Below the pieces are notes generated by a model, which saw nothing but the letters and a program-made list of their open reading frames with translations, did not search any database and had not been told where the DNA came from. DNA of 64,000 nucleotides from IMG/VR virus record IMGVR_UViG_3300023199_000204, positions 124,001 through 188,000 of that record; one strand, given 5' to 3'. The position numbers and the translations under genes were made by a program. Position 1 is the stretch's first letter. Every line of letters begins with the position of its first letter. Below, piece after piece: positions 9,301 to 38,558 of this stretch.

Positions 9301-10208
9301 GATTTAATTCTTGGAGAGTTAATAAATCAAAAAGTATAACATTAAATCAAATTAATTCTTTGGAAGAATTAGGAGTCAAGTCCAATATAAGTAAAAATTG
9401 GGTAATTGATGAGGTAAAAGAAGTTTCTATTCCATTTGAATCAAAGGTATATGACATGACTGTACCTAATGTTCACGAATATCAAGCTCAGGGATTTATC
9501 AATCACAATTCATTTTGGCACGCAGAGCTAATGTTTAAATATAATGGAACTACTCCTGAGGAACATATTGATTTCTGTAGAACTCACGAAAAAGTAGTTC
9601 AGCCAGGTGGAAACCCTTTTAGAATAAATCCATATTTCTTGGGCTTTAAAATATTCAAAGATATTGAGAAAAGATGGGATGAAAAATATAAAAATGGCGA
9701 AAGCAATATTTCTGGAAGAGAAAAAATATTCAAAGTAAGAGCGGAAGAGGACGACATCTCTTTTGTCAGAAATTACTTAACTAAAGAACTAGTAGAAGAG
9801 CTTCATTTATTTACATATGGATATGAAAAGGAATATCCCGAAGGTTTTGATGGTGAGAAATTGATTCAAATGAAATCACGGAGCCTCAATGATGTTGTTG
9901 AGTCTATTGTTTCTCCGCTATATAACTGTGGTGCTCCAAAGATTGTAATAACTGGATTAAATAGAGAAGGAGGTCTTGTTTTGAAGCACGATAGCGAAGA
10001 GATAGGGACTCTTAATTTTAATTTTGCCAAAAAGACACTTGAATATTTATGGCACCTTTGGACGGAAAATATCGAACTCCACACAAAAGATGATGACGGA
10101 AATGAAGTTATTCTTTGCTTTGATGAAGTTGGATTTTATGTTAAAAAATTAGATGAAGAATTAGATTTTCTAGATGAAGAGGAAAAAAATGAAGATTTTA
10201 AATTCTAG
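6333..10208 (+). CDS. spoVR: SpoVR/YcgB-family protein with two inteins; about 483 aa after splicing
   Basis: YGLPTRARHWSYG, YEVILNNNPSYAF, TKILNEGWA-SFWH, INPYFLG. Confidence 0.92.
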   Translation: MNNRIEEILQLAKDEGLDFFPVVFEIVEKTTMNNVCAYGLPTRARHWSYGRSYDHQKTYGEMGLSKVYEVILNNNPSYAFMLDTNTPVQNLFIAAHCSAHCFITGTLIETQNGPKNIEDITLNDKILTHKGIYRKPMALSKTKHKGYLYTIGIGSHKITCTPEHPFYVVSSEECVLNYRKSICRPNCKYKNQDRCKDKPYSSYEPSWLKAQDIKIGDFLVYPKNKTIGCEPVKSFIINGEKEHGHPGGVKEVEYTINIDEAFGEFLGLYLAEGYAREGGQMGLCFHTKEKGLHKDSHRLIKQLFELKTYNSISEDTHSHQVLFNEKVLANWLINNLGRGSGNKQIPDFLLKSGNEKFFLALLKGLFHGDGHGRDRSINLTTTSSILATQVRQICAKYNYITNIKIRKYNDKKTAYVITLSGTSRVSLLNDTGIYWNNYSGNRSYEFGWYDEDNIYIPVKTVDVSCNNEEEVYNLEVPKDSSYTLFAGAITHNSDFFKNNIMFKGSDRNMIRHAAEHAGRVEKYIEKYGFDKVEHLMDVGFALDNHIDWHKGLYRKPYDEKKEIYRKRNPGEFDDLLYKKYKPTIVKDTVNDKFPPSPERDLLWFLITYAPLKNWEVDLLNIIRTESFYFYPQMMTKILNEGWACLCPGSLVFSPQNGMVPIEELVDKGFDVIDRNNNTHKLSDKYNGYKICRNVKTKRGFELSGAENHGVLCWDEKPIYKKIKDLCSGDKVVISSNQNCWSNKTQKLPSVSLSGKEREGFKLPKYLNKDVAKFLGYFLAEGHIGKRCVCLTNGDLNVAKDMCLSIEKTFGYKVSPREEESRYRVEFYSTSVCELLNKLNLSGGARNKRIPKEILTSPKSVVIEFLSAAFTGDGGAYNKYGILALSTGVKENANIIQLLLLNLGIVSTISVCKKSGYEDTYQVWIRENLMKKAFSKIIKTSSKLKEKVLNSFKNHNNKNTYKWSYNISDKDINNISLFLQNTTQKKEKEVGFNSWRVNKSKSITLNQINSLEELGVKSNISKNWVIDEVKEVSIPFESKVYDMTVPNVHEYQAQGFINHNSFWHAELMFKYNGTTPEEHIDFCRTHEKVVQPGGNPFRINPYFLGFKIFKDIEKRWDEKYKNGESNISGREKIFKVRAEEDDISFVRNYLTKELVEELHLFTYGYEKEYPEGFDGEKLIQMKSRSLNDVVESIVSPLYNCGAPKIVITGLNREGGLVLKHDSEEIGTLNFNFAKKTLEYLWHLWTENIELHTKDDDGNEVILCFDEVGFYVKKLDEELDFLDEEEKNEDFKF
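6633..7808 (+). mobile_element. SpoVR intein 1 (392 aa, LAGLIDADG)
   Basis: H/CFITGT start, CTPEHPF, LGLYLAEG, GLFHGDG, ITHN/S end; restores AH-SDFFKNN. Confidence 0.93.
8262..9509 (+). mobile_element. SpoVR intein 2 (416 aa, LAGLIDADG)
   Basis: A/CLCPGS start, GAENHG, LGYFLAEG, AFTGDG, INHN/S end; restores NEGWA-SFWH. Confidence 0.93.
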
Positions 10209-10581
10209 ATATAAAACAGTAGTTATAGATGATGATCGTTATATCATGTATAATAATATTGGAGAATTTTGGTTTAAAAATAAAAAGCTACATAGAATAA
10301 GCGGACCTGCGTTTATTGGTAAAAACGAAGATAAGTTTTGGTTTCAAAAGGGAAAGCTTTATCGGACCGATGGTCCAGCAGTGGAATATGCTAATGGAAC
10401 TAAATATTGGTATAAAGAAGGAAAGCTTCATCGGACCGATGGTCCAGCAGTAGAATGGGCCGATGGAACTAAATATTGGTATAAAGAAGGAAAGCTTCAT
10501 CGGACCGATGGTCCAGCACTAGAGTATAGTAATGGAACTAAAGAGTGGTGGATAAAAGGAATGTATATAAAGGTGAAATAA
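10189..10581 (+). CDS. 23-aa repeat protein (KLHRTDGPA; MORN-variant-like), copy 1
   Basis: Three 69-bp units plus one degenerate unit; begins MKILNS. Confidence 0.85.
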   Translation: MKILNSRYKTVVIDDDRYIMYNNIGEFWFKNKKLHRISGPAFIGKNEDKFWFQKGKLYRTDGPAVEYANGTKYWYKEGKLHRTDGPAVEWADGTKYWYKEGKLHRTDGPALEYSNGTKEWWIKGMYIKVK

Positions 10582-11763: not shown

Positions 11764-11768
11764 TTTGT

Positions 11769-19819: not shown

Positions 19820-20112
19820 TTGTAGACAAAGATAAAGAAAAATCTGATTTGCTATTGAAAGATATTGTTAAAACTAAGTTTAAATTAGAGGATGAGGGTA
19901 AAAATCCGAGAGTAGTTTTATTATCAAAAGAAGAAAATGAATTACTTAAAAATAATTGGATTAAAACATATAAAGAGCTGCCTTGGGCAGATAGTATTAA
20001 TTTTGAACTTATTAGAAATAAAAATAAAGAGAGTATATTTCTAGGTGACGGAACTATATTAGGTTTGTGGGTCGTAGTTGTTGATACGATAGAGGAATTT
20101 AAAGTATATTAA
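19816..20112 (+). CDS. Hypothetical protein
   Basis: Coupled open frame. Confidence 0.7.
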   Translation: MIVDKDKEKSDLLLKDIVKTKFKLEDEGKNPRVVLLSKEENELLKNNWIKTYKELPWADSINFELIRNKNKESIFLGDGTILGLWVVVVDTIEEFKVY

Positions 20113-20876
20113 TGATAGTTTATATAAAAAGCAGAGAAGAATTAGAGGGTTTTAAATTAGCTTCAAAGCACGCTGCGGAAATTCTAGAAAAATTAATAAA
20201 AGCGGCTAAACCTGGAGTGGAGTTAAGACATCTTGATGAACTAGCAAATAAAGAATGTAAGTCACGCAATATCATTCCAATATTTTTAAATTATAATGGA
20301 TTTCCTGGCTCAGTATGTTTGTCTGTAAATGAAGAATTAGTTCACGGAATTCCTTCAGACAGAACACTAAAAGAAGGTGATGTTCTCACGATAGATTTTG
20401 GCTCAAATTATAATGGATATATTGGAGACACAGCTGAAACTATAGTTGTTGGGCAAAAACAAAACAATTTAATTAAATGTTGTAAAAAAGCATTAATGGA
20501 AGCAATTAAATTATCAGTTCCTGGTAATAAATTAAACGATATAGGTAGAGTTATAAGTGGTATTGCTAAAAAGAATGGATATTGTATTCCTTACGGATAT
20601 GGCGGGCACGGAATAAATAGATATGAGTTACACGGTTCCCCATTTGTTCCGAACTATGAAGTAATTGAAAAGGAAAACATAACATTAAGAAAAGGAATGA
20701 TAATAGCTATAGAGCCTATGTTTATAGATGGCACCGACAATACAACTTCTGTTAAAGATGATAATTGGACGGTAGTGGCTAGTGGAATTTCAGCACACTG
20801 CGAGCACACCATAATGGTTGATAAAAATCCACTTATTTTAACTAAAAGAGGCATGGATGTTAAAATGTGTAGTTGA
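20112..20876 (+). CDS. map: Methionine aminopeptidase, type I
   Basis: CLSVNEELVHGIP, IDFG, GYIGDTAET, GGHGI, AIEPM, SAHCEHT. Confidence 0.93.
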   Translation: MIVYIKSREELEGFKLASKHAAEILEKLIKAAKPGVELRHLDELANKECKSRNIIPIFLNYNGFPGSVCLSVNEELVHGIPSDRTLKEGDVLTIDFGSNYNGYIGDTAETIVVGQKQNNLIKCCKKALMEAIKLSVPGNKLNDIGRVISGIAKKNGYCIPYGYGGHGINRYELHGSPFVPNYEVIEKENITLRKGMIIAIEPMFIDGTDNTTSVKDDNWTVVASGISAHCEHTIMVDKNPLILTKRGMDVKMCS

Positions 20877-21945
20877 TTGTAAATCGCCTCTAATAACTGA
20901 AAATAATATTAAAACACCAGATAATATAAATATTAATGATGAATTATTAACTTATAAAAATGGAAGAGTTTTAAAATCAAAAGTAGTAAACATTTATAAA
21001 GAAAAATTAGAAGCAATAGAATGCTTATATTATGGAAAAAACTTATGTTGGTCTACTTTTAATAGTAAATGGATTTCTGTTGATGAGAGAAGACCAAGAA
21101 ATGAAAATAAAAAACTAATACAAAATATTAAAAATCATAGAAAATTAAAGCGAGCCCCATTCTTTAAAAGTAATTTAGGTAGTGTGGATGAGCCACACTC
21201 TTATGCCATTGGAGCTTTATTAGGAGATGGATGTAGTATTAATGGTAAAAATAAAATTTACATTTCTTCAAAAAACTCTATTATACCAAATAAAACAACT
21301 AGAGTAATTTCAGCAAAATATTGTTATAAACTTAAAGGGAATAATTATACTTATTGTATAAGTAACGAGCCAAAATATACTAATCCACACAAAACTACAA
21401 AAGTAAAATGTCATTTTTATAATAATTGGATCGAGGATAGATATGCTCACCAAAAAATAATAGATATTAACAAAATTAAGAAGTGGAATAGATTATCTTG
21501 TATAAAGCTGTTAGCAGGATTATTAGATACAGATGGATCCGTATCTATTAATAATAATAGATTAACTATTTCTTGGGGAATGCAAGCAAAAGAAGTTATT
21601 AAATGTATTAAATATTTAATATTATCTCTTTGGTACTTCAGTCCTTCTATTTATACTAGCAAAAGAGATAAATATAAAAATGGACCATTATATGTTATTT
21701 CAATAAGAAATAATAGAATATCAAAAATGATGTTAAAAGAAATGAATAAAGAATTAGTTTGTGATAGAAAGAAGTATAAAAGCTTTTACAATAATATTAA
21801 AACACCAGGCACTTCTGATTTATTTTTAACAGTTAGATTAGGTAAGAAAGAAATTAGAGATATGTATAATATTTTTATTAATAATCCTATTATATTGGCT
21901 AATAATAGGGTAGTTTGTGGATTTGAGGAGTTAAATGAAGAATAA
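20857..21945 (+). mobile_element. Free-standing intein-derived LAGLIDADG homing endonuclease with degenerate splicing motifs
   Basis: IGALLGDG and LAGLLDTDG motifs; Hint-like N- and C-terminal blocks lacking the block-B His and terminal HN; no exteins. Confidence 0.7.
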
Positions 21946-22585
21946 AAAAGGATTATTTATTACTATCGAAGGAGGCGAAGGTAGTGGAAAGACGACTCAG
22001 TCTAAATTACTTTCGAAGTGGATGGAAAGTAATAATATAAAGCATTTTTTAACCAAAGAGCCAGGGACAGAATATCTTGATGAATGTATTAAAATTCGCA
22101 AATTATTACTTGATACAAAAAGTGATTTAAACTACAAGTCTGAATTATTATTATTTTTAGCAGACCGAGCACAACACGTTCATAAATTCATATTGCCAAA
22201 GCTAGAGCAAGGAATTCATATTATATGTGATAGATACTCTGATTCAACTAGAGTTATACAAAGTGCTAGGGGTTTAAGTAGAACTAAAATTAATTCTTTA
22301 ATAGAGTTTTCCACTTCAGAATTAAATCCAGATATAACATTTATTTTGGATATGCCAGTTGAAACGGGATTGAAAAGAGCAAAAGCAATAAGTATATATG
22401 AAGACGGAGATAGAATGGAGTCTGAAAGCCCAAGATTTCATGAAAATATTAGGCAGGGGTTTTTAAAACTAGCTGAAAGTATGGATGACAGGTATTATTT
22501 AATAAATGTCGCACCGCCTGCGACCTCTGAAGAAATACACGAAAAGGTTGTGGAACAGGTTAAAAAGAAATTATGGGAAGTGTAG
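21935..22585 (+). CDS. tmk: Thymidylate kinase
   Basis: FITIEGGEGSGKTTQ, TKEPG, ELLLFLADRAQH, ICDRY. Confidence 0.95.
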   Translation: MKNKKGLFITIEGGEGSGKTTQSKLLSKWMESNNIKHFLTKEPGTEYLDECIKIRKLLLDTKSDLNYKSELLLFLADRAQHVHKFILPKLEQGIHIICDRYSDSTRVIQSARGLSRTKINSLIEFSTSELNPDITFILDMPVETGLKRAKAISIYEDGDRMESESPRFHENIRQGFLKLAESMDDRYYLINVAPPATSEEIHEKVVEQVKKKLWEV

Positions 22586-22592
22586 GTGTAGT

Positions 22593-23618
22593 ATGAATAC
22601 TTGTATAGTTATTTGTGGAAAAAAAGTTGATATAGGGACAAAAGTTATTTTGTGGAATGATCCAGATGGGCTTAACGCTTATGGTAGATCAAAAAATGTT
22701 TATTATATTGAAGATAGAAAAACTGGCAAGAAGAAAAAAGAAGTGGTTTCGGGAGCAAGATTTAATTCACGAAGCAAAATAAGTAGCCAGCCTAGTTTAA
22801 ACAAAATTCGAAATATAGTTACGCAATTTTTCTTACATCACTCAGGCTTATATAGAGCAAAAGATACATTTAATGTTCTTCATAATCAAAGAGGAATATC
22901 TTGTCATTTTATACTCGATGATGATGGAACTATTTATCAGACTTTAGATATGAGAGAAAGAGCTTGGCACGCAGGCTTAAATAACACCATAGCTGTTGGA
23001 GTTGAGATTGATTCAAGAGCATACGCAAAATCATTGCCAAAGGCATATGACAAATTTCATCAAAAAAGATTTGGAGTTATGCCGAGAAATAAGAGATTAG
23101 ATAGAGTTAATGGCGATAATATACTGGGATACGAATATAATGATGCTCAGTATAATGCCTTGATTAATTTAGGAATAGGAGTGAAGGATATTTTTCCAAG
23201 GTTATGGGAAAGTCCAAATAAATATTTAATTGATTTTCCAAGAGACCAGAATGGAGATATTATTAAATCGAAGTTAAGTAATCCTACGAAGCATATAGGT
23301 TTTATTTGTCATTATAATTCAAGCAGCAGCAAAAGAGACCCAATCGCTTTTGATCACGACAGATTTTTAAGAGGTGTTTTTGAAGACAATCCAAATCAAA
23401 AGTCAACTTTTGTTGATTTAAGCGACTGGGAAAAGAGACAAAAGGCTCTTAAAAAGTTAAATTTTGATCCTGGAGTAATTGATGGTATTTTTGGATTAAA
23501 TACAAAAAAAGCCATTATAGCTTTTCAGAAGAAATATGGACTTGTTGCTGATGGAGTTTGGGGCTACAATACACAGAGTGCTATAGAGAAGGCACTAAAG
23601 GGCAATAATGAAGATTAA
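22593..23618 (+). CDS. N-acetylmuramoyl-L-alanine amidase with C-terminal peptidoglycan-binding domain (endolysin-like)
   Basis: FLHHSG, SCHF, AWHAG, GVEI; PGVIDGIFG...AFQKKYGLVADGVWG. Confidence 0.87.
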   Translation: MNTCIVICGKKVDIGTKVILWNDPDGLNAYGRSKNVYYIEDRKTGKKKKEVVSGARFNSRSKISSQPSLNKIRNIVTQFFLHHSGLYRAKDTFNVLHNQRGISCHFILDDDGTIYQTLDMRERAWHAGLNNTIAVGVEIDSRAYAKSLPKAYDKFHQKRFGVMPRNKRLDRVNGDNILGYEYNDAQYNALINLGIGVKDIFPRLWESPNKYLIDFPRDQNGDIIKSKLSNPTKHIGFICHYNSSSSKRDPIAFDHDRFLRGVFEDNPNQKSTFVDLSDWEKRQKALKKLNFDPGVIDGIFGLNTKKAIIAFQKKYGLVADGVWGYNTQSAIEKALKGNNED

Positions 23619-24385
23619 AGTAATAAATACACATTATATTTTTAAAAATATGAGTTATAAAGAGTATAATATTATATGTAATATAATGAGTTGGAACTAT
23701 TAAAAACCATCTTTTGCGAGTTAATCAAATTATGACGCGTTTATAGATAAAGAAGTGAATTCGTGTAGAGTATGTCAAAAGTGATATATTGATAAAGAAA
23801 CAACAAAGGAGTGTTGAAATGAAAGTTATAAATAGCAAAAAAGGTAAAAGCTCATTTACTATAAGTTCGGACGAAATGATTTTGGATTTTCTTGAAAATA
23901 TAAGAGTTTCTTGTGAAGTTCCCAAAGACAAAATTTATGTAATAAGTGAGCCTATTGTGATAAAAGGAAAGGGTAAAATTAAATGAAATTAATAAATAGT
24001 AGCTCCTCCGTTAAAGTAACTGCTAAAATAAGACCTACAACTATAATATTTAATAATGGAGAATGGACTTCAACTAACAATTACACTCTGTTTAATGATG
24101 ACTTTATAATAGAGTATATTTATAAAACAAATTGGACTGTTGATAATAAAGGGGAAGAAAATGGCTAAAATGATTAATTCAAATAAAAACACGATTACTA
24201 TATCTCTTAAAACGCTCATAGAGACTGTTGTGGAAAATATAAGGACAAATTATTCAAGAAGTTTATTTGAGCTTGAGGAAATAATTAAAATCAACGGCAC
24301 TGAGGAGTTAAAAAATCCTTGTAATGAGGTCACGGGTATAGAGCCAATATTCACAAAAAAGATTAAAAACTGTGAGAGTATTTAA
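23608..24385 (+). other. Four small ORFs (23608-23703, 23819-23986, 23983-24168, 24161-24385) with the K-x-IN(S/T) N-terminus
   Basis: Starts MKIKVINT, MKVINS, MKLINS, MAKMINS. Confidence 0.7.
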
Positions 24386-25230
24386 TGAAAGAAATTAAAG
24401 TCTTAGAGAAAGGCTTTGTAAAATTGGTTGATTATATGGGTGATGACAGTTCAATAGTACAAGCCGCACGAGTGAGTTATGGAGAAGGAACTAAAACTAT
24501 AAGAGAAGATAGAGATTTAATAAGATACTTAATGCGTAATAAGCATTCTTCACCTATGGAAATGGTAGAATTTAAATTTCATATTAAATGTCCAATATAT
24601 GTTTTTAGGCAAATTATTCGGCATAGAACATTTTCAACAAATGAAATCAGCCTTAGATATTCAATAGTTAAAGATGAATTTGATTTAACTCTAGAAAATG
24701 AGTGGCGAGTTCAATCAAAAAATAACAAACAGGGCAGTGAGGGACTAATAAGTAAAGAACTAGGTATAAGTTTTACTGATAAAGAAAAATATATAGCCAA
24801 TAATGCTAAATCAGCATATGATAAAATGATCGTTAATGAAGTAGCGAGAGAGCAGGCTAGAAAAGTTCTTCCAGTATCTTTATATACTGAAGCCTATTGG
24901 AAGGGAAATTTACATAATTTATTTCATTTTCTTGGGTTAAGACTAGATTCGCACGCACAACAGGAAACTAGAGAATATGCTGAAGCTTTATTTAATTTAA
25001 TAAAACCAATAGTTCCCATTTCCTGTGAAGCTTTTGAAGATTATAGATTAAATGCTGTTCAGTTCTCTTCTAGAGAATTGAAATTAATACAAAAAGCCCT
25101 AAAAGAAGGCATGATTCCAGATAGAAAATGGATTAAGGAAAACGCAAATGGCAAACATCCAGAATTAGAATTAAGCCAAAGGGAGAGGAGAGAATTTCGG
25201 ATTAAACTTAATCGAAATGTCGATAATTAA
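24385..25230 (+). CDS. thyX: Flavin-dependent thymidylate synthase
   Basis: IVQAARVSY, HSSPME, RQIIRHR, NEISLRY, AREQARKVLP, AQQETR. Confidence 0.95.
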   Translation: MKEIKVLEKGFVKLVDYMGDDSSIVQAARVSYGEGTKTIREDRDLIRYLMRNKHSSPMEMVEFKFHIKCPIYVFRQIIRHRTFSTNEISLRYSIVKDEFDLTLENEWRVQSKNNKQGSEGLISKELGISFTDKEKYIANNAKSAYDKMIVNEVAREQARKVLPVSLYTEAYWKGNLHNLFHFLGLRLDSHAQQETREYAEALFNLIKPIVPISCEAFEDYRLNAVQFSSRELKLIQKALKEGMIPDRKWIKENANGKHPELELSQRERREFRIKLNRNVDN

Positions 25231-25245
25231 GATTTTCCGAAATAC

Positions 25246-25730
25246 ATGATAATGATGCCAATTGATGAAATCAAAGAATATAGGAACTTAAATATTGGAG
25301 ATCTGGTCAGAATAAAAGATAGATTTATTCCACCTGTTCTTGAGGGTTTAAAACCAGTTTCTATGGAAATAGTTAAATATATTAGAGATAATGGAAATAT
25401 ATTTACTATATGTAGAATACTTCCATATAAATCTCCAATATTTAAGTTATATGAGGTTATGTCAGTTGTTGATTATAGGCATTTAAGTCCATTTAGACAA
25501 AATGGAAGTATAAGGATTTTTAATTGGAAAAGAATAACTTAGAGTTTGTATTTAGAGATAATAGTAAAATAAAGTTTTTAATAGAAGATAATAAACTATC
25601 TATAGTTCTTCAAGCAAAAAATTTAGGTTCAGAAAATAAAATAACATCATCTAGCGTAGAGCTTAATGAACAAGAGTTCATTGAGCTAGTAAACTGGCTA
25701 GGAGAAAATTTACTTAAAGGAAACGATTAG
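25246..25730 (+). other. Two small hypothetical ORFs (25246-25542, 25524-25730)
   Basis: Coupled open frames. Confidence 0.65.
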
Positions 25731-25731
25731 A

Positions 25732-26379
25732 GTGGGTCAAATTACCAAAGAACATCTTACAGAATTAGAGCAGACTATAAAAACATATGCTCCAAAATTT
25801 GAAGTAAAGTTTAAAGATGAAAGTAAACTAATGAAGGTAATAGGAAAGCTTTCATTTTTTAATAAAGACTTTATGACCAGCGGGGCAATAACCGTTGGGC
25901 AGAAAGTATATTTCCCCTCACGTGAGATTTATGAGACGAACCCAGAATGGTCTTTTAGGGTTTTAACTCACGAATTTGTCCATATAATGGACTGGTTAGC
26001 TAACCCCTTCACATTCATAATTGGTTATTGGTTCCCTCAAATGCTAGCAGCGTTCTCGTTGCTGGCATTTTTAGCTTTTATCAATCCGTATTTTCTATTG
26101 TTCTTGACATCTCTTGTATTTTTGGCTCCAATCCCTGCCCCAATAAGGGCTTGGGCGGAGCTGAGAGGCTATGGAATGAGTTTAATGATAAAATCAACTC
26201 TATACGGCATTGATATTAAAGTCGCAGCAGAGAGCTATGTGGGGCGTTTCAGCAGCCCTTCTTATTGGTTTATGTGGCCATTTAAAAATAATGTAAGAAA
26301 AATGCTCGTAAAGTTTGCTATGAGCAAAGATCGTCCATTTGTAATCGTAAGAGGCTTAATGGAGAAGCTTTCTTTATGA
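25732..26379 (+). CDS. Putative membrane-anchored HExxH zinc peptidase
   Basis: THEFVH, hydrophobic segment, downstream AELRGY candidate third ligand. Confidence 0.55.
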   Translation: MGQITKEHLTELEQTIKTYAPKFEVKFKDESKLMKVIGKLSFFNKDFMTSGAITVGQKVYFPSREIYETNPEWSFRVLTHEFVHIMDWLANPFTFIIGYWFPQMLAAFSLLAFLAFINPYFLLFLTSLVFLAPIPAPIRAWAELRGYGMSLMIKSTLYGIDIKVAAESYVGRFSSPSYWFMWPFKNNVRKMLVKFAMSKDRPFVIVRGLMEKLSL

Positions 26380-27455
26380 AATATGATGTGATAATTATAG
26401 GTGCTGGACCAGCGGGTGTCTCTGCTAGCTATAAACTTTCCAATAAATTAAGCACTCTTATAATAGATGAAGGTAAAGGTATTAGTAGAAAAAGAAATTT
26501 AACTTCTGGTTGGTTTGGAAGAGGGCTGTTTGGGGTAAATAGACTTGAGCTTAATGATATTAAACTTAATAATGATAAAGAGTGTAATTATATTTTAGAA
26601 GAGCTTAAAAATGTCGCTCGACCCAGCAAACCAATAATAAAAAAGAAATTTTGTTCTTTTCCATTACTTGCTGGTCCAGCTATTGCTAATTTCTATTTAA
26701 ATAAAATAGGCAAAACTGCTGATATATTATTTAATACTAAAGTTTATAATATAAGAAAAGAAAATGATTTATTTATAGTAACTACAAGTAAAAAGGAATA
26801 TGTTGGTAAAAAGTGTATAATTGCTACTGGAAGTAATTCGTTAGTGTGGTCAAAGAAAATATGTAAATCCGCAGGGATATATAGCAAAACTCCAACTATC
26901 AAGGTAGGAGTTAGAGTAGAAATACCCACAAGGATTTTAAACTGTCTTACAGATGACCATAATGTAAATTATAGTGACATAAGACCAAATGCTTTTGTTG
27001 GAGAGTGGGAAGATTCAAGATTTGTCTCAGCCTTTTCTCACGGGCTCCCAGAAGAAAGATCCGAAAAAACTAATTTTACAATAGGTAAAAACTATGAAGA
27101 AACTAATAGTATAATAAGAACTATCAAGATAGTTAATGTTTTAGCTAATGATAAAATTAAAAGAGAAAAGGTATATAATTATCTTTCAGGAAACTCAATA
27201 CTAAAGCACATAGGTCTGTTTAGCAATTTAAAAGAAACTTTTTTGAAAATAGATGAAGAAATTTCAAACTTTATAGATTTTGCTTTTATGTATATTCCAG
27301 AATTAAAATATAGTGGGATAATTAAAGTAGATGAAAAGATGAAAACTAATATAGATGGGTTATATTGTATTGGTGAGGCTTCTATAAAAGCTGAGACAAT
27401 TATTGGCGCTATGGCATCAGGTCGTATCGCCGCTAAAGGAATTTTAGGAGAGTAA
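26376..27455 (+). CDS. FAD/NAD(P)-dependent oxidoreductase
   Basis: IIIGAGPAG dinucleotide motif, IIATG, TNIDGLYCIGE...AMASG. Confidence 0.8.
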   Translation: MKYDVIIIGAGPAGVSASYKLSNKLSTLIIDEGKGISRKRNLTSGWFGRGLFGVNRLELNDIKLNNDKECNYILEELKNVARPSKPIIKKKFCSFPLLAGPAIANFYLNKIGKTADILFNTKVYNIRKENDLFIVTTSKKEYVGKKCIIATGSNSLVWSKKICKSAGIYSKTPTIKVGVRVEIPTRILNCLTDDHNVNYSDIRPNAFVGEWEDSRFVSAFSHGLPEERSEKTNFTIGKNYEETNSIIRTIKIVNVLANDKIKREKVYNYLSGNSILKHIGLFSNLKETFLKIDEEISNFIDFAFMYIPELKYSGIIKVDEKMKTNIDGLYCIGEASIKAETIIGAMASGRIAAKGILGE

Positions 27456-27458
27456 TAA

Positions 27459-30400
27459 ATGACAAAGAAAAAAATAACAAGTAAAAAGAAAACAAGTGCT
27501 GTTAAAAAACCAAATTTGGTTGAGCAGTATTTGAAAAAAAATAAGTCTAAGTTAATGGAAAACGAGAGCATTTTGGATGTAGGACCAGGTGAAGATGGAA
27601 AGATTGTTGTATTAACATCTGATCCAAATCTAGAACTCAAAGAAGTAAAGGGCGTAGAATTTAATATATTATTTGCTGGAAATCAGAAATTAGAGGAAAT
27701 TAGGGCTAAATATAATTTAGTAGCGAACCCACTTGTGGAAACTCACAAAGCATCAGAAGCCATAAATCCCAACTCTGAATCAGCAAATATAGAAGAATAT
27801 AAAGCCTGGAAAAAAAGACACTCAAGGAGTTAAAATGGATTTTGTAACACTGTTAAACAGAGGGCATAAGTCTTATATTGAAAAGTATCTAAAACCTAGA
27901 AAAAATGGCACGTGCGATGATTGTGAATGTTATGCGTTGCTAATATCTACATTTTTAGATTCTGATATATGGAATTTGTGCGAAAAATGCTACTCGGAAG
28001 TTATAAAGGAGTATGAATTCTAGGTGAAAAAAATGAAACTGGTAAATAGTAATAATAGAGAAGAAACATTAAATTTGATAGACCAGATATTGGAAGATTA
28101 CAACGATGTTGGTGATTTTTTTGATTTAAATCTGGAAGACATAAGAGAGCCGTGTTGGCAAATTAAAATAGATAGGAAAGAAGATTTAATAAGGTTTTTA
28201 ATAGATTTAAAAGAAATAACAAATTTTCCTTTGCCCGAAGTTGATATAAATTCTGAATTTTTATATTTGGCAATGAAATTATTTAAAACAAAAGACCTTG
28301 TTAAGCTTGAAGATTTTTTAAAGTCTGGAAGTTATGAAACGTTATAATAGAAGATTATTATTTTTAATTATAACTATAGCAGCCGTGGCAATTGGCGGAT
28401 CGGTATTTCATTATCATTTTAGGCAGAATAATAAGTCTTTTTGTAAGCTTAGCGAATATAAAAGATTTAAAAGATGTCCTTGGATTAGAAGAACTTTGAT
28501 TTTTAATAAAACTTCTTGGGCTGTGGAATATTATTGTAATCGCAATGAAGCGTTTTTTCAAATTTTTAATCCTACCCTATCTGTTAAAAATTATGTAGCA
28601 AAAAGATTTGTTCGGCTTTCTTTAAGTGGTTTTAAGGTTAATAAAGAATGTCAATCCAAAAAACAAATTACCTATCACTTAATAAGATGAATCCGTTTTC
28701 TCAATTCCCAAAATTATTAGAAATGTTGGTAAATAAAATATCCGAGATTTCTCCAGAAAATGAAAGCGAAAGTGCTAAAAAAGCAAGGAAAAAGTTGCTT
28801 AAAAATTTAGAAAATGTTAATCAAACTTTGATTAATATCTCTGATAATAATGAAGAGCTGCCATTTACCAATGAACAAATAGAAGCATTGGCTAAAATAA
28901 GGCTAGAAACAAAAGATATAGAAGAAATGGTAAGAAAAATTACTAATTTTAAGGAGAAGATTAATGAAACTGATAAATAGCAATTCATTAACTCAAATGA
29001 AGGCTTTCGAAGAAATGGTAGAACAACTATCGTTTGAATTCGATTCAGATTGTAATTTTGTTAACAATTTGGAGTTTTCAGATGAAGATGTAGAAATGAT
29101 GCTTAGTTTACTTGACGAATGGGATAGTGTTCAAAAAGATAGTAAAGTGATAGATTATTCAAAAAATCAAGAAGAATTTATGTTTTATATCCCTGAACCA
29201 TTGGGAGATGAAACTACTGAAAAACATTCAAAAAATCTCAAATTTAGAGATGTAACTACGACTTTCACTTTTTAAGTCTCTGCTAATATTTTTACATCAA
29301 GATTATGAGTAATATCAGCAAAATTGCCCAAGATTTATACTATGCTATGATCACTTCTGGTATGGTTAAACAGGCTATTAAATTAAAAGAAACAGTAGCA
29401 GAGGTTAATTCCTCATTGGATTCCTATATTGATTCCACTATCTATCAAATGATAGAAGATTTAGAACATCACGGCAGAGATGAGGTGGTTAAATCTATTA
29501 AAAAGGCGGCAGAAAGCCTATGAAAATAATATGTATTAATTCGAATGATAGGGTAAAAACCCTTTGTAGTGACTATACTTTAACTATTTTAAATAGCACA
29601 CCGTATAATGATTCATTGGATTTTATTCGTTATGAACATACTGGGGATTATTATACTACAACATCAACGGCACCAGATGATTGGATATATTTTCCATCAA
29701 ATTTGGCATATGACAGCACCACAACAGGAGCTAATAACGATGAATAGGAAACTGAAATACTGGCTAGAGACTAAAGGCAGAAGGCTCATAGAGCTTAAAC
29801 TGGCGGGATGTAGCGAGTATTTCGCCAAGGTAAGGGATATTGGCAAAATGGAAACAATTTCTGCCGAAGAGTGGGTTGAATTTATCGCACTCACAGGGGA
29901 AATGGATGCCTTGCTTTGGGTCCTTCAACCTAAGTCTTCTGAGAGAAAAGAAAAATTTAAAACCGAAGTTAAAAACTTTCTAATCAAGATTGAAAGCCAA
30001 ATTTTGGAAATTAATGAAATAACAGGTCAGGCTTTGCTTCCAAAAGGTGAGGCGTGACACGGCTGATTAACTCTGGTGTTGAATTATGTGTAAGAACTTC
30101 AAAAGGGGACCTCATCGTGAGGTTCCCTTCTTGCGTTAGGTTTATGTATTATAGAATATTTAAAAAATCAGGTATGTATATAGCAAAAGAGCAAATGGAC
30201 CCAGATCTAGAGTTTGTTTGCTCTGTTAAAATTCCACAGGATATAGTCATAAAATGAAATCAAAAATAATATCTATTCTTAAAGATGTTTCCTCCTATTA
30301 TTCAAAATTCTCATCAAAAGAAAAGAAAATAAGAATTATATTTGAATGTCTAAATTGTAAGACAACTTACGATATGACAACTATTTATAAAGATAAATAT

Positions 30401-33400
30401 ACTCTAACTTGCGTTTGTGGCACGGAGCTTGAAAGTGAAAATGAAAAAAAATGAATCAAATAGTAAATGCGAAATGAGAGCTTATGTTGTGAGTTGGAAC
30501 AGAAATTATAACTTTAGCCCATATGATATTTTTTGTAACCCTCCAAATTCCCCCACTGTTTATGATGGGTTCAACCTTGAAGTAAAATATAAGTGCCCAT
30601 ATTGCTCTGCTTTATGGACAGTTGAATTTAATTACTATCATAATAGTTTTAAAACAGTATGTATGTATAAAACCCCTCTTATTGTATCTATAGAAAAATA
30701 CGTTTAATGAAAATAAAAGCAATAAATTCAAATGCCCCACCATATCAACTCATATCAAAGATAATTGAAAAAATAGAATATCGTTGGAATAATTCTCTTA
30801 GTTTGGAATTATCTAATAGATACTTGTATCTAGAAAGACTTTTAAACCGATTACAGACAAAAAGAAGAATTTATAGATGGCACTATTCTATGGATAGAAA
30901 AGTTCTCGCAATAATTCCATACCTTACATCTAAAATTTTCTATATTATTTTGAGGTTCTAAATATGAAAATGTTAAATTTCAGTCAAAATGAAAAGTGGG
31001 CTAAATACATAAAAGAAAAGCTAAAAAATATGTCCAGTTGTCCAGGAATGAATGAACTTGCGTCCCTAACAGCGGATTTGATTATAAAAGCAGATGGGAA
31101 AGTGATATTTATAACATATTCTTTAAAAGAAATTAATATCCATTTTTCAAATGGAATGAAAAAAAGGATAAAGATTTGAAAATATGTAAAGTAAATACAA
31201 ATACTTATGAAATAAACTTTTTTAAAGACCATCCAGAGTGTGAAGCAGCCCGTAGGATTTTTAAAAATCTGTTGTCGTTCAAAAAAATAGTTAAAACAAC
31301 TTCAAATAACAAAATACTTTTTATTTATAAAAATATATATCTTTTTATAGGGTCAAATGGTGGCCGAATAGTAAGAATAGCACTTTATAATAAAGTCGAT
31401 GAAAACTGTTGTATAACTTCTATTTCCTGAGGAACTTAAATTTTCAGAAAATCTAGTAGAAATAATGAAATTTATTGAAAAATATGATATTAATTAACTC
31501 CTCCCATAAAATAATGTTATTACCCAAAAGTATTAGTTTGCCCAAAGGATATACGTATATAAAAGAACTTTGTATATATTGTTCAAAATTTTATTATCTT
31601 TATTATCCTGAAAAACCTGAAGCAGTAGATGTGTATGAAGTGTGCCCTCATTGTTATTGTATCATATATCATAACCAAATAAAGGAATATAAAATGTTAG
31701 TAATTAATACAATCCCAAAATTTATTAAAGATAATCCAGTTTTAGTGCCATTCTATAGACATTTTGTAAAATTTGACCCAGAAGTTGTTAAAGAAAATTT
31801 TACAGATAATTATCTGCTTATGAGATTCAAAAAACCAAAAAAGACGGCATACGTTGTTCTTCAGCCCAGGATAGTCCTGCCATTCTGTACCATAACAACA
31901 TATGATCAATCTGGATGCTGGGTTTCGGATTTCTATGATACGCTTTCTCTTCCAAAAATATGCTGATCTCTAAACTTGAAAGTAATAGGTTTTTTGAAAT
32001 TAAAATAGGAGAGGTAGATGTTGGATATCATATCAAAGTTTTTCTTAAAAAGAAAATCATCTTTTCTGTTGTTAAAAGATTGGAAGGCAAGTTCTATAAA
32101 ATAAAAATACCTTTTAATGAGACACCAGTAGAGTTCTCAGTAAATGTGTCCTATCCAGGATTTCTAACTTGGCAATCAAAACATTATATATATAATGGAT
32201 CAGGGTTTATTATTTACTTTGATAAATGTCCAGATCCACTATTATCGGAGTATAGATTATGATCATATCTACATTCTCAACTAATGTCGCTAAAATAATT
32301 ATATCTAACCTTAGAAAAAACGATAACTTACGGCTCCTGTCAGCAAGAGGATATAGAGAAGTAAGAAAAACAATGTCGGAGAAAGAAATATTCTATGTGC
32401 CCTTCTGCCATTATAAAATATCAATTAGCGTCTCAAATCCGTATATGTTCACATTTCAAAAACAGGTTCTTGTCGAAAGTAAAAGAATAGGTGTTCATAG
32501 GAGAGTTATAAGATGATAATATGTGGAATAAATTCAAATAAATCTCCTTTACAAATTGTTTATGAACAAATAATTAATACTTGCTTGGTGACCAAAAATG
32601 ACGTGGCTTATATATCTCGCCCAGATATAGAAGGAATAATAGTGTATTATAGAGAAAATTTCTATGCCAAAGTAAGATTGACTGCTTATGATAAAAAGGT
32701 AAAAGTTAATTCATTTACGGAAGCTAAAAATAAATTTGGAAATTGGATCCAATATAGAAAACAAATTTATCTTGAAGACCCATATGTTTTATATGATTTT
32801 AAAAGCTTGGGGCTAAAAACATTATCAAAATTAAAGTGCTAAATCCTTATTCTTTAATACAATAAATTCATCAAAAAACCAAACATCTCTTGAATTTAAA
32901 TAAAAACCTATTCATTTGATGCTGAATATATTCAAGAAGAGAGCAAATAAAGATAATTTTATTACCGAGACTTTTATCCAGATTAATCAGTTTTGTGTGG
33001 AATTTATAATTTCAAAGAAATAGAAAGTAAAACCCAATACCTATTACAGGTTCCTAAAAATAAAGGATTTATATGAAAGTTACATTAATTAATGCCAACG
33101 GCTATACAATCCAAATAAACCGCGTCACAATTGGTTCAAAAATTAAAATAATAGGTAAAAACTATAAATATCAGGGTTTTATAAATAAAAACCCTTTTAA
33201 AATCACAATGCCGCTCCCAAAATATACTCGTCTTAAAATAACCATATACGGTGCCAATAGATATATCTTTAAAAAAAGAATTTATCTTAAAGATATTGAA
33301 ATAATCAATACCGCGACATTTAGACCAATTTTAACCCTATAAATGAAAATTAAAGCAATAAATTCAACAACTTTAAAATCACTAGCAAATAAAATTATTG

Positions 33401-33935
33401 CTCACTTAAATATAGAAAATCCTCGTGTTTCTGAAAAATTAAAAAAGTTTGTAACCATAGCTTGGCGGCATAAAAATTATCACTGTTATATTGATTACGA
33501 TAGAGAAATAATAGCCCTCGCTATCATTGTGGTTTCATCAAAAGGTTATAATTTCATTTATAATGCCAAAACAAAGTTTTCCAGAGATATGAATAAATTA
33601 AATGATTTCAAGGAAATATTATGAAAATTAAAGCAATAAATTCAACTGATCTTAAATCAATAGCAATAAAGATCAAAAATTACCTTCAAATTAAAAATCC
33701 TGATATTTATGGACCAGAAGATAAAGACCCCTGTTATATCACAATTTATTGGCACAACACGAAATATAGGCTCTATATCGATGTTGAAAAACCATTGCCT
33801 TTGACAATATCGCTATCTATCTATAAAAAAAAAGGAAATCATAATATCAAGAATTTTCCATTCGTTCTCACAAAGAAATTAAATATGAATAAATTAAATG
33901 ATTTCAAGGAAATATTAAAAAATTATGAAGATTAA
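27459..33935 (+). other. Array of about 22 tightly packed small hypothetical ORFs (27459, 27835, 28033, 28334, 28687, 28964, 29305, 29520, 29740, 30054, 30254, 30417, 30707, 30964, 31176, 31475, 31960, 32259, 32513, 33073, 33343, 33621)
   Basis: Overlapping start/stop coupling; many start MK-x-INS; some have CxxC motifs. Confidence 0.7.
32821..33009 (+). pseudogene. Decayed paralog of the KIKVLNP family
   Basis: Frame IIKIKVLNPYSLIQ* continues through TAA and two TGA; no start codon. Confidence 0.45.
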
Positions 33936-34237
33936 AGTCCTAAATCCAAATGATTTATATCAACTAACAAAAAAAAAACAAGCGGCTCCTCAATATTGAA
34001 GAGGCTTGGGTGGGTGAATATTGTTCAACACTCTTCCTGAAAACAAATCACTTTCGATTCTTTGTTGATCTAAATAAAATAAATCCTAGCAAAATTAGAT
34101 GCCGGCTGTCTATTTATAATGATAAAATCACCATAGGAAATATTGTTAATTATAAAATTGTTGAGCACTTTCTAAAATATCCCTTCAATATTGAAGAACT
34201 TAAATCTTTCAAAGATATTGTTGAAAAATATAAATGA
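33925..34237 (+). pseudogene. KIKVLNP-family ORF, apparently frameshifted in an A-run (or sequencing error)
   Basis: MKIKVLNPNDLYQL start; C-terminus in another frame resembles 33343/33621 (ELKSFKDI vs KLNDFKEI). Confidence 0.5.
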
Positions 34238-34750: not shown

Positions 34751-35210
34751 TTTACCGAACGGGGTGCCCCGGAGCCTCAACTTCAAAAGTTTCCCGCCTG
34801 GGTCCGTACTACATCACCCTACGTGTAAGATAATATCCTACATATAAATAACTCCCTGAAATTATTGATGAAAATATTTTTCCGTTTGAAAAACAATGGA
34901 TCGACGATTATATTAGGTTGAAAGCGGCAAGCTGTGTCGGCATGGCGCAGCAAGGGTGAGCAGGCACAGGGGGCGAGTGGGTGATACACACCTGAGCCCC
35001 CGCAAGAGACCCGAAGGGTCTCTGCTCCCCAAAAAACACAGTGCTGGGCGTTTGATTTATCCAGCACGACGCTTTTAGAAGGTTGAGAGCGTCGGCGTCT
35101 GCGTGGTGTAGGCGTCGTAATCCTGGCGGGATTTCCCGCCGCATACGGAACGGGGCCGGCTTAGGCATAAAGCCCCAAAAGATAGCGGGTAAAACCGCAA
35201 GGAGACTATC

Positions 35211-35720
35211 ATGAGTAAGTTCAGCATTTTCTTGGGAAGGGGAACGCAGATCAGCATCGCGAATACGAAGCTGCGCGAGAGCGTCGTCAGGGCAGCGGAG
35301 GAGCGCAACGTGGGGGAGGAGAAGCTCAAGGCGCAGCTGGATAAGCTGTGCAGCCCGGAGGATCGCGCGGAGTGCCAGTCCGTGTTGGAGGGAGGTGGGT
35401 CCGTGACCACGAGCCTCTACGATCTCAACGACCTTACCCCGGAAGTGCGCAAGAAGGCCGTGGCCTTCTTGCGCCAGCTGGCCAAGCAGGCGGGCAGCAA
35501 GGTTCGCGAAGTGCGGTTCACCGTGACGGCACCGAAGTCCGGAAAAGTCGTAGGTAAGTCGTCCGGCCTCAAGGGCATTCTCAACGCGCCGGTGACCATC
35601 ATGGGCGCCGAGCTTGAGCGCGCTGGCGCCAGCAAGTCGGACGGGCCGAGCGCCTTTGACTCGGCCATCGCCTCGATCCTCGGGTCCGAGGACACCGACA
35701 GCGAGACCGCCGACGCCTAG
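35211..35720 (+). CDS. GC-rich hypothetical protein, first gene after the junction
   Basis: AAGGAG RBS, strong G/C third positions, hairpin after stop. Confidence 0.85.
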   Translation: MSKFSIFLGRGTQISIANTKLRESVVRAAEERNVGEEKLKAQLDKLCSPEDRAECQSVLEGGGSVTTSLYDLNDLTPEVRKKAVAFLRQLAKQAGSKVREVRFTVTAPKSGKVVGKSSGLKGILNAPVTIMGAELERAGASKSDGPSAFDSAIASILGSEDTDSETADA

Positions 35721-36616
35721 ACTCTTCGGGGGCGCAAGCCCCCGACATTCCTACCTTTTTAAAGGGGCGGTCCCATTAACTTGGGGTCGCCCCTTTTCCC
35801 ATTCGAGCGCTAAATGCGTTTCTGCGTGTTCGAGCAAGGGATCGCCCACTGCTACGTCCCTAGACTTGTCTATGTGGGGGCGTATCAAATCTCGACATGT
35901 GCGGACGCATCCGCACCGTTCGACGATTACTGGCTGGTTCGCTAAGTCGACTCAGTCACACCTTTTGCCCGCTTTCCTTAATGGTTTGCGGGCTTTAGGT
36001 GTTCGAAGGGTTTTCTCCCTTCGAACGCAGATCTTAAACTTGCTTTGATGTTTCTTGGGAATAATCTCCCAGAAAGCATCATAACCAGCGTTGCGGTCGT
36101 CACGGCAGCAAAAGCAGGCAAGGGACAGTATGATGCCGCGATTCATCTCGTGGCTAAGTCTCTGGTTTTCCCCGACCACAACTCTTGGGGGAATGAGTGG
36201 AGTACTGCCTTCACTCACGCAACATTGGAGCTAGACTCCAATGATCACGGCAGGTTCTACCGCTAGCTAAGGTTCTTTTTGTTTCTTGGGCACCATAGGT
36301 GCCCTTTAAGCATTCGAGGAGACTTTCTCCAAAAAACAAAAGGGTTTATATCTCTACTTGACTTTAAAACGAGGGTAGGGTTCGTGAACCTAGGAAACTG
36401 TAAGCCTAATTACAGTGGGCGGGGGGCCTCACATTTCATAGTTATTTTTTTGAAAAGGTTCGTGTTAATTCTGGGAGCTATGGCTCCCTATAAGCATTCG
36501 AAAACCCACAAACAAGGAAGCTCCCAGTAGATGAGTTGAAGCGACTACTTAACTCTTAATGTTAATGTTTAGAGGGCACCATAGGTGCCCTTTAGGTATT
36601 CGAGAAAGGTAAAGCA

Positions 36617-36763
36617 ATGACCACTTTTATCACGGGCTTTCTGGTTGTGGGGATTGTATTCATTCAGAACCCAGCGAAATACTTTGATGTATGCGCTGGA
36701 TTCTTTGTGGGTTTGGTTTTCACTTTGATTATGGTTTTGGTTTTTGGAAACCAAAACCGATAA
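36617..36763 (+). CDS. Small membrane protein, 48 aa
   Basis: Read manually; two hydrophobic stretches; lies between two hairpin elements. Confidence 0.6.
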   Translation: MTTFITGFLVVGIVFIQNPAKYFDVCAGFFVGLVFTLIMVLVFGNQNR

Positions 36764-36860
36764 TTTTTTTCTGAAATTTTTTTTTGGAAAAGGGCGTATT
36801 AATCCTTCCAAGGGTTCACGCCCTATAGGTGTTCGAAAACACACAAACAAAGGAGCTATT

Positions 36861-37160
36861 ATGCTCACTCGGAAAGAGAAAGAAGAACTGTTGCGAAGGA
36901 TCCTAACCTTTCGCAAGGGCAAAGTGAACCTTCGGACGCAACGACCGAAAGGTCAGGATCAAGAATCACTGCGTGCGTACTTCGTGTGGCGCATGGCGAG
37001 ATTCCATGGTGGAGAAGATCTGAGCATGCCGATTCAGGCACTTCAGGTCATTGGAGATGACGAAGCGCTCCCCGACTTGAAGGAGATGGCCGACAAGCTG
37101 GCGAAGCGTTTCTTTGGGAGTGACATGCGAGCCGTCAATCGGTTCGAGGGTCTCTTCTAG
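36861..37160 (+). CDS. Hypothetical protein, paralog of 49629-49949
   Basis: AAGGAG RBS; shares MLT...RKG...YFVWR. Confidence 0.8.
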   Translation: MLTRKEKEELLRRILTFRKGKVNLRTQRPKGQDQESLRAYFVWRMARFHGGEDLSMPIQALQVIGDDEALPDLKEMADKLAKRFFGSDMRAVNRFEGLF

Positions 37161-37212
37161 GGGAGACATATACATCGGCAAAACACTTTAAGGGCACTTC
37201 GGTGCCCTTTAG

Positions 37213-37786
37213 GTGTTCGACAATACACAAGCAAAGGTGGCTATAGTGGTTGTCATCCGTCACGAAATTATCAACACCTTAAAGGGAGACTTTGAGGTTT
37301 TCTCGGGAAAGAATCCCGAGCAAGTGGCCTGGATTCTCTCTTACGTTAAGAGAGAGTTTAAGGGGCGACTGTTTCCAGCAACTCCTGGAAATCCTGACGG
37401 CATCGTCAGGAATGACCAGGGCGAGGAAATCGGCCTCTATACCTATGAGGCTCCTCCGTTTCGGCCTCGCAACTCCACGTGGCTATATGTGGAAATTCGG
37501 CTGTGAGCCATAGAGCCTTTACAGGTTTATATACTTTTGCCCACTTTCCTTAATGGTTTGTGAGCTTTAGGTGTTCGAAACCTCATAGTCAAGGAGAGTT
37601 GAAATGACTCAGAACCTGTATCAAATGACTCGTCGCCTCCATCGCAAAAGCCCGCAGCAGCTAAGGGCGTTGCTAAACAAGCTGGCGGTCATCGGTGCGA
37701 CCACGAAGACCAACGTCTCCGGCTACATGAGGGACGTGAGCCACATGATGGCTTGGAAACAAGTGGAGGGGCCGCACAAGCGATAG
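37213..37786 (+). other. Two small hypothetical ORFs (37213-37506, 37604-37786)
   Basis: One ORF per inter-hairpin interval; start of the first is uncertain. Confidence 0.6.
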
Positions 37787-38148
37787 GTCTGCGGGACTTA
37801 AACAAAACACTCACAGGCGCGCGGGATTATTTCCTTAGCGCCTTTGGGTGTTCGAAGAGCAGAGCCGGTTGGTCCCTGGTTCGAATCCTACTTCTCGGCT
37901 TCGAGGAAAAAAAGTTTGAGAAGTATGACTTCGGAATATAAACTTCTTTGATAAAAGGGTCTTCGGACCCTTTAGGTATTCGAAGGGCGTAAAGCTTAAT
38001 TGTTTAACTTGACAACTTAGCTTAACTACTTAACAATTTAATATCTTAATCTTACACCCTTCCTCTTAACTTAATGTTTCTTTTGCCAGTTGAAACTGGC
38101 AGCTAACCTCAACCCAGAGCAAGAATGCTCCAAACCAAGGAAAAAACA

Positions 38149-38511
38149 ATGAGCACGACCACGAACAAAATCATCGAGCAGGCGAAGTCGGCAATAGTGA
38201 ATGGTACGAAGATCGGCGCCAGCGTCAATCTCGGTCGTCAAATCACCAAGCTGGTTCGCGATTTCGCGGGAGCACACTACCCCGAGGCTTTCAACAGCCC
38301 GCTGTTCAAACAGGTGGAGCCGCTTCTGGTGGCTTTCATCGTCCAGGCTGCGACCACGGCATATCCGAATGTGCCGGGAGCGCAGAAGGCGAACAAGGTC
38401 GCTGGACTGGCAATGGTCGGTGAGGCTGCCCTTCTGACCCAGGAGCTGATGTCCAAGGTGGATGTGAGCACGCTGTTCCAGCGAGTGGCTGCTCTCGCTC
38501 CAACGGAGTAA
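38149..38511 (+). CDS. GC-rich hypothetical protein
   Basis: AAGGA RBS, high GC3. Confidence 0.8.
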   Translation: MSTTTNKIIEQAKSAIVNGTKIGASVNLGRQITKLVRDFAGAHYPEAFNSPLFKQVEPLLVAFIVQAATTAYPNVPGAQKANKVAGLAMVGEAALLTQELMSKVDVSTLFQRVAALAPTE

Positions 38512-38522
38512 GCAGGTATAAG

Positions 38523-38558
38523 GCTTCAACGGGGCCGCGGCTCGATGGCCGCGGTGAT
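38523..38558 (-). CRISPR. Solitary 36-nt CRISPR-repeat-like unit, type I-G (I-U)-like; no array
   Basis: Minus strand ATCACCGCGGCCATCGAGCCGCGGCCCCGTTGAAGC: 7-bp stem and TTGAAGC 3' end. Confidence 0.55.

Follow-up and report, generated by a model that had tools for sequence, protein, structure and literature searches.

In phage T4, the internal proteins IPI, IPII, IPIII and Alt carry capsid-targeting sequences (CTSs), a short N-terminal peptide that they share (PMC9026906). A T4 CTS is 10-19 residues long and ends at the cleavage site of gp21 (L/I-x-Glu) (PMC9026906). The subject of this report is a peptide tag found at the N-termini of otherwise dissimilar small proteins, encoded in a block at positions 23,608-34,237 of a 64,000-nucleotide stretch of virus record IMGVR_UViG_3300023199_000204. 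This whole stretch, called the window below, covers bases 124,001-188,000 of a single virus contig of 316,473 base pairs (bp) with about 31% guanine plus cytosine (GC). Positions are those of the window unless the genome is named, and genes are named by their first position. The tag is like the T4 CTS in being a short N-terminal peptide on dissimilar small myovirus proteins at a variable locus, with bodies (the parts behind the tag) that turn over between relatives. It is unlike the CTS in that it is shorter (6-8 residues), has no [LI]-x-Glu site and sits on genes in a nucleotide-metabolism block. With a probability of roughly 0.5, the tag is a short linear motif that acts at the protein level and gives fast-changing accessory proteins a common recognition handle.

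Other described systems also come close. Double-glycine bacteriocin leaders, which are cut by C39 peptidases, combine a conserved N-terminal leader with a variable remainder in tandem genes, and a C39-like peptidase is encoded inside the same block in four related phages. However, the tagged proteins have no Gly-Gly in residues 1-30, their bodies are folded and 55-160 residues long rather than short cores, and a profile of the relatives' C39-like protein found no homolog in this genome (best E 0.12). The C-terminal junction of inteins (block G) resembles the tag in its hydrophobic strand followed by Asn and Ser/Thr, but the tag has neither the penultimate His nor a partner N-intein, and the residue after its Asn (+1) need not be a nucleophile. 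Tandem arrays of small paralogous genes that arise in single phage lineages are similar in their local expansion, subfamilies, relics and frameshifted copy; in this array, unlike in those, only the first 6-8 residues are common across subfamilies, and the remainder is at control level.

A local tag on dissimilar bodies

The general form of the tag is M-[KR]-hydrophobic-(0 or 2 residues)-hydrophobic-Asn-[Ser/Thr], at the extreme N-terminus, and it has a short form, M-K-h-h-N-[ST], and a long form, M-K-h-x-x-h-N-[ST] (h, hydrophobic). A first-pass annotation of the window had listed 17 such N-termini with their positions, and all 17 were found there. Most of the tagged gene starts have a Shine-Dalgarno sequence or a stop/start overlap. 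Asn is followed by Ser/Thr in 14 of 16 local tags, the +1 position being looser in orthologs, and a further Asn comes directly after the tag in 9 of the 16.

The strict motif, M-x(1-6)-[ILV]-N-[ST], was scored over the 32 curated genes of the block. It is present in 14 of them, beside two near forms (INA at 33073 and LNP at 33925) and one further near-tag, MKMLNF at 30964. Inside the proteins of this genome [ILV]N[ST] occurs at 0.0021 per position, so that about 1.3% of genes would carry it in residues 3-8 by chance; the binomial probability of the 14 strict tags is about 1e-18. Comparing the block with the rest of the genome gives an odds ratio of 48 (Fisher, p 8e-14). There are 23 strict tags in the whole genome versus 6.75 expected, and the rest of the genome, counted without the block and without a four-gene paralog family at genome 113.6-114.9 kilobases (kb), is at chance level (8 of 499 genes versus 6.3 expected). 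This rest serves as an internal control for base composition. The short-form DNA pattern has 10 matches on the coding strand, none on the other strand and none when reversed, and unbiased clustering of all N-termini of the genome puts both tag forms among the top clusters.

The motif is thus non-random, and the tag is local, not genome-wide. The annotation's statement that the tag is missing right of 35 kb also holds, with no strict tag in window 35-64 kb. It had counted MKILNS at 10189 among the tagged starts; this N-terminus is present and may be a chance occurrence, because the motif is at background outside the block and the four-gene family. Chance and AT-rich codon bias at gene starts, the latter named beforehand as what could undo the observation, were rejected as explanations: the same genome is at background elsewhere, relatives at 38-40% GC retain the tag, and it is carried over a range of 31-40% GC.

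At the DNA level, the tagged gene starts form two families of direct repeats of 21-28 nucleotides (D1; D15/D16). They encode the same peptide by different codons, with Ser written as AGY in one and as TCN in the other. The hydrophobic positions use the codons ATA, ATT, GTA, TTA, CTG and CTT in this phage, and in the long form the inner two residues vary freely (KA, IC, CK, CG, TL, KV) while the flanking positions hold. Among relatives, Lys changes to Arg (AGA, CGA, CGT), Ser to Thr and Ile to Leu or Val, and the Asn is invariant. The sequence upstream of the ATG is not conserved among the tagged genes. Judged from these conservative substitutions, mixed codons, invariant Asn and unconserved upstream DNA, the tag appears to be kept by purifying selection on the peptide. 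The rare Leu codon CTG (3% usage) is common to three neighbouring tags, which points away from selection at the peptide level alone and suggests that some of the tag DNA was copied recently.

The bodies are mostly unlike each other, as the first-pass annotation had described them. Comparisons of tag-stripped proteins give only small subfamilies, and a full-length homology uniting all the open reading frames (ORFs) is not detectable. Of the three findings that the annotation had named as refuting, two thus fail, codon bias and this homology. By blastp and phmmer, 33343 and 33621 are linked to each other and to the frameshifted 33925/34010 copy (handled with an X at the frameshift for profile work), 23819 is linked weakly to 24161, the four genes at genome 113.6 kb are linked among themselves, and 10189 is linked with MORN-like paralogs. 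Shuffle-normalised Smith-Waterman scores are not higher for 344 pairs of tagged bodies than for 3,240 tagged-untagged pairs (Mann-Whitney p 0.57), and a profile of the 33343 subfamily retrieved none of the other tagged bodies. DNA similarity between tagged genes ends after 20-28 nucleotides, and no cross-frame similarity, which would be a sign of bodies born by frameshift, was found between them. Isoelectric points range from 4.2 to 10.4, and charge and Cys content vary widely. Pfam and PHROGs returned nothing significant for 20 tagged proteins, a word-based search of 5.8 billion proteins returned no homolog for the 31484 protein, and a word-based protein search left the 33621 protein without a homolog elsewhere.

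The array also carries signs of turnover, namely the frameshifted 33925 copy, a tag relic at 32821 in which ATC stands for ATG, and a truncated-looking ORF of 31 residues at 23608, which is probably a relic of the long-form class. Downstream of the 32821 relic lies a gap of 230 nucleotides without an ORF of at least 60 residues. An exact repeat of about 35 nucleotides, at 33587-33621 and 33883-33917, spans the junctions at 33621 and 33925; it takes in the end of one paralog together with the ribosome-binding site of the paralog that follows, and it is a breakpoint of public assemblies.

The anatomy of a tagged protein is clearest in the 28033 family. In an alignment of five orthologs, M1, N5 and a handful of core residues are invariant, and the 7-20 residues after the tag are variable and rich in indels, with the conserved core beyond them. 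An AlphaFold model built on these five sequences (mean predicted local distance difference test score, pLDDT, 77) has a disordered tag (residues 1-6 below 50), helices of low confidence and a beta3-alpha2 core predicted with confidence (residues 41-100 above 90). The model of the 33343/33621 pair, built on two sequences, has a mean pLDDT of 63, with residues 1-8 below 50 and a helix plus five strands at about 70-78. Since the tag scores below 50 and a variable linker precedes the core, the tag resembles a free tail joined to a linker and does not seem to belong to the predicted fold. The 28033 model had no clear counterpart in fold searches, whether by Foldseek (E at least 0.59), by Z score (best 4.9) or in the Atlas (TM at most 0.46). 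No tagged protein has a hydrophobic run of at least nine residues within its first 30, and Sec, Tat and lipoprotein signal peptides were rejected for want of a hydrophobic core, which should have about 10 residues or more behind a basic N-terminus. A conserved Glu is absent from the tag alignment.

Related phages

First queries of a phage collection and of IMG/VR returned no near relatives, and relatives were reached only through an untagged protein of 215 residues encoded in the block (25732-26379). This protein, which contains hydrophobic segments and an invariant HExxH, is related to about 100 proteins from metagenomes, and 6 of 29 members of its family match the zincin-like domain eCIS_core weakly. 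Contigs with a homolog keep the order MetAP, thymidylate kinase, amidase, thymidylate synthase, two small genes, the 215-residue protein, a flavin adenine dinucleotide (FAD) oxidoreductase and then small ORFs. In six such contigs (GC 31-40%), the strict tag is found on about 15 of 72 small genes right of the oxidoreductase, and several more have close variants.

The 28033 protein has an ortholog in all six contigs, and it is tagged each time (MKLINS, MRLLNK, MKVINS, M-LNT, MKLMNS, MKLVNS). Three of the six relatives share a second tagged family, which has a pair of Cys at the C-terminus; in its slot, the tagged gene of this phage and that of the relative L020 encode a body that is shorter and of another kind. 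Every phage readable at the slot behind the 29743-type gene (this phage, L020, L023 and L026) has a tagged gene there, again with differing bodies.

Other observations were made in relatives. The contig L029 has its 25732-type gene between a head-module gene and the major head gene. In the distant relative L021 (a 284-kb contig with 42% GC), ten adjacent genes at 1829-8023, encoding 43-258 residues, share another leader of about 15 residues with an I-x-E-like site at its end (MKITKRQLRRIIREE and variants). This leader array is the same phenomenon with another peptide. Of the nine genes scanned with PHROGs, seven had no match and two matched only families of unknown function. In L027 (13421-14454) and L028 (13776-14329), small genes in tandem, with AEDFGL as a common N-terminal motif, come after a C39-like peptidase gene, an arrangement that may be a leader-and-peptidase pair.

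Tagged genes and their setting

The tagged genes, near-tags and relics are collected in Table 1.

Table 1. Tagged genes, near-tags and relics in the window
Position	Strand	N-terminus	Product	Remarks
10189..10581	+	MKILNS	MORN-like repeat protein	paralogs start MNYEKYEV
23608..23703	+	MKIKVINT	31-residue ORF	followed by 116-nucleotide gap; 43-nucleotide similarity to start at 33921
23819..23986	+	MKVINS	55 residues, isoelectric point 9.4	weak similarity to 24161 protein (E 0.003)
23983..24168	+	MKLINS	61 residues, isoelectric point 5.1	
24161..24385	+	MAKMINS	74 residues	
28033..28347	+	MKLVNS	104 residues, acidic	family F1; tagged orthologs in six related phages
28964..29275	+	MKLINS	103 residues, acidic	rare CTG Leu codon, as in the 28033 and 30054 tags
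29520..29747	+	MKIICINS	75 residues	D1 repeat
30054..30257	+	MTRLINS	67 residues	GTG start; slot tagged in relatives by synteny, bodies differ
30707..30961	+	MKIKAINS	84 residues	reference copy of 28-nucleotide direct repeat at gene starts (D1)
30964..31179	+	MKMLNF	71 residues	near-tag
31176..31430	+	MKICKVNT	84 residues	TTG start
31484..31966	+	MILINS	160 residues, Cys-rich	
32513..32842	+	MIICGINS	109 residues	
32821..32865	+	..KIKVLNP..	tag relic	ATC replacing ATG; out of frame at 3' end of 32513 gene
33073..33342	+	MKVTLINA	89 residues	Ala replacing Ser/Thr
33343..33624	+	MKIKAINS	93 residues	true paralog of 33621; AlphaFold modelled
33621..33935	+	MKIKAINS	104 residues	paralog of 33343
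33925..34237	+	MKIKVLNP	third 33343-family paralog	frameshifted at A10 run (33969-33978)

The contig belongs to a tailed phage, a myovirus that encodes a tail sheath and an HK97-type major head protein (head gene at genome 11,791-12,822), and the + strand holds nearly all of its genes. The tagged block is bounded by an amidase gene (22506-23618) and by a GC-rich island starting near 34.8 kb, and it lies among genes of nucleotide metabolism, at a distance of about 135 kb from the major head gene. Other products that can be recognised are DnaB, a PrkA/DUF444/SpoVR trio, a class II ribonucleotide reductase and PhoH-PIN, as well as thymidylate kinase, the amidase and ThyX. The window also has many homing endonucleases and at least six transfer RNAs (tRNAs). 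Within the tagged block, promoter and terminator signals were not above those of shuffles, and no intergenic motif was enriched except tRNA arms. The sequence is present in three DNA runs of one study, with identical reads and no variation. CheckV puts completeness at 18% for this contig (classed as linear) versus 75% for a relative in synteny with it (301.7-312.6 kb), and for this clade its estimate seems unreliable. The contig may be incomplete.

The island that adjoins the block on the right (34800-42000) has 47-56% GC in a genome of 30% GC. Few of its genes are recognisable (NTP_transf_2 at 38637 and DUF7227 at 41151); a tRNA-Met lies at 39249 and another tRNA at 42194, and an Rfam scan of the island gave no match. 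At the equivalent place in L020 the GC content climbs to 37-39%. The island may be foreign DNA, mobile DNA or an assembly chimera.

Several repeated or mobile features occur in the same genome. The MORN-like repeat family (HRTDGPA..W.KEGK units) has at least seven genome copies, five of them in the window (10174-10581, 43788-44024, 46797-47216, 48546-48920 and 50365-50748). At genome 113638-114865 (L010:13638-14865), four tandem tagged paralogs stand between guanosine diphosphate (GDP)-sugar genes and glycosyltransferases. This family has one relative elsewhere, in the same synteny and with the N-terminus MKLLNK, and its C-terminal half recurs nine times in a metagenomic protein of 2,382 residues (P0007). 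Four inteins in window 1925-14849 interrupt PrkA, SpoVR (at two sites) and the class II ribonucleotide reductase, and all end in H-N followed by Ser; Pfam LAGLIDADG domains are present in three, those of PrkA, the reductase and the second SpoVR site. A free-standing LAGLIDADG endonuclease of 362 residues (20857-21945) overlaps the end of the MetAP gene (20112-20876). It has an intein-like N-terminal splicing block after three residues and a degenerate C-terminal block at its end, and looks like an intein turned independent gene. Outside the window, in the structural region (L005/L006), proteins of 95, 758 and 189 residues at genome 19081, 19372 and 21648 share an MS(K/R)WDYF..ITV N-terminus, by which tail or baseplate proteins may dock in a common way.

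Readings of the tag and what they mean

The simplest account of all the results is a shared recognition handle under protein-level selection. The handle would sit at a free N-terminus, on a flexible and variable linker ahead of small globular bodies. One reader, a machine of the phage or of the host for sorting, processing or degrading proteins, would recognise a changing repertoire of proteins by the tag alone. A few tagged families would be old and common to related phages, and this phage would have enlarged its tagged set by tandem duplication, with the bodies turning over, the handle kept, and relics and a frameshifted copy left behind. The tag is presumably read by some partner, for which the candidates are the assembling head, by analogy with the T4 CTSs, the conserved HExxH membrane peptidase-like protein at 25732-26379, and a host protease. 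Among the ideas of the first-pass annotation, docking on a common partner or protease appears to be the best reading. Its proposal of a shared sorting signal holds up as far as a real, selected and separate peptide module is concerned; the specifics of T4-like capsid targeting are not supported, given the missing [LI]-x-Glu site and the location.

Several points weigh against the handle. No reader of the tag was found in the analysis, and in some orthologs the Ser/Thr position is taken by Lys, Ala, Asn or Ile. Nearly all the tags lie in a single block, as tandem paralogs would also give. Both AlphaFold models are based on thin alignments (two and five sequences), and they share one order of elements (tail, helix, beta meander, C-terminal helix), so that the tagged proteins may have a very old common fold. 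In the closest large relative (301.7 kb), the coding strand bears just three tags of the short form, about the control count. Because of this, a rich tagged repertoire is not general, and the large set here is a lineage-specific tandem expansion, from which most copies come.

The main rival explanation is that all the tagged genes are one ancient, extremely diverged tandem paralog family, whose N-terminus is structural, as a first strand or a helix cap. Tandem clustering, the true subfamilies (33343/33621/33925, more weakly 23819/24161, and the four genes at genome 113.6-114.9 kb), the relics and frameshifted copy, the same N-terminus (MKLLNK) in the other phage's relative of the 113.6-kb family and the common secondary-structure order of the two models all agree with it. 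Nevertheless, such paralogy is on the unlikely side: residual similarity between the bodies is not above the control level, sizes, charge and Cys content differ widely, and the tag is unpacked in both models, ahead of a variable and indel-rich linker. The extreme N-terminus is, moreover, usually among the least conserved parts of a fold. A strict T4-type CTS would bind the prohead core, be cut off by the prohead protease after its protein is packed, and leave that protein to be injected with the DNA. The dissimilar small proteins with a shared N-terminal peptide at a variable locus fit the pattern of the T4 internal proteins (PMC9026906), the phage, a myovirus, has both a tail sheath and a head protein of the HK97 type, and the L021 genes have a longer leader with an I-x-E-like end. 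This reading fails two defining tests, however, and is improbable. [LI]-x-E in residues 6-25 is not enriched (25% of tagged proteins versus 21% of controls), Peptidase_S77, the gp21 type of prohead protease, is unmatched in the 316-kb contig (as it also is in every control genome in the same search), the block is remote from the head gene, and the tag has 6-8 residues versus 10-19 in T4.

It is very improbable that the peptide is a by-product of a nucleic-acid element, such as a translation-initiation region, the operator of an RNA-binding repressor or a recombination site. Such an element would explain why direct repeats (D1, D15, D16) sit exactly at the gene starts, why three neighbouring tags have the rare CTG in common and why an exact 35-nucleotide repeat lies over the 33621 and 33925 junctions; it would not explain two different nucleotide families for one peptide with both AGY and TCN for Ser, three Arg codons in place of Lys in relatives, varied hydrophobic codons, an unconserved region upstream of the ATG, or a motif that persists at 38-40% GC. 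The notion that the tag is a minimal C-intein, letting alternative bodies trans-splice onto one partner with an N-intein, is hardly credible. It draws on the resemblance to block G and on the H-N and Ser at the ends of the four resident inteins, but the tag has no penultimate His and orthologs accept Lys, Ala, Asn or Ile at +1. An orphan N-intein was not found in the 316-kb contig with PF14890, PF13403, PF07591 and a custom profile, the N-intein profiles matching only the resident inteins and the intein-like endonuclease at 20857.

A rather doubtful further possibility is that this clade of huge myoviruses has a new kind of sorting signal in the tag, which sends a fast-evolving repertoire of small effectors to a single place: the virion, for co-injection, or a processing peptidase encoded by the phage. 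If true, any new gene fused behind 6-8 codons would become a delivered effector, and the principle would have a second example in the L021 leader.

The genomes of huge phages consist mostly of small ORFan genes, and a role is known for almost none of them. A handle that marks a whole set of ORFans would offer an experimental entry point, since the protein that binds the tag would reveal the destinations of a dozen proteins. Should it be a packaging or delivery signal, it would be a very short and portable tag for loading cargo, a use already made of the T4 CTS. Even if the tag is only the conserved end of one diverged family, the block still documents an unusually fast turnover of bodies in a tandem array.

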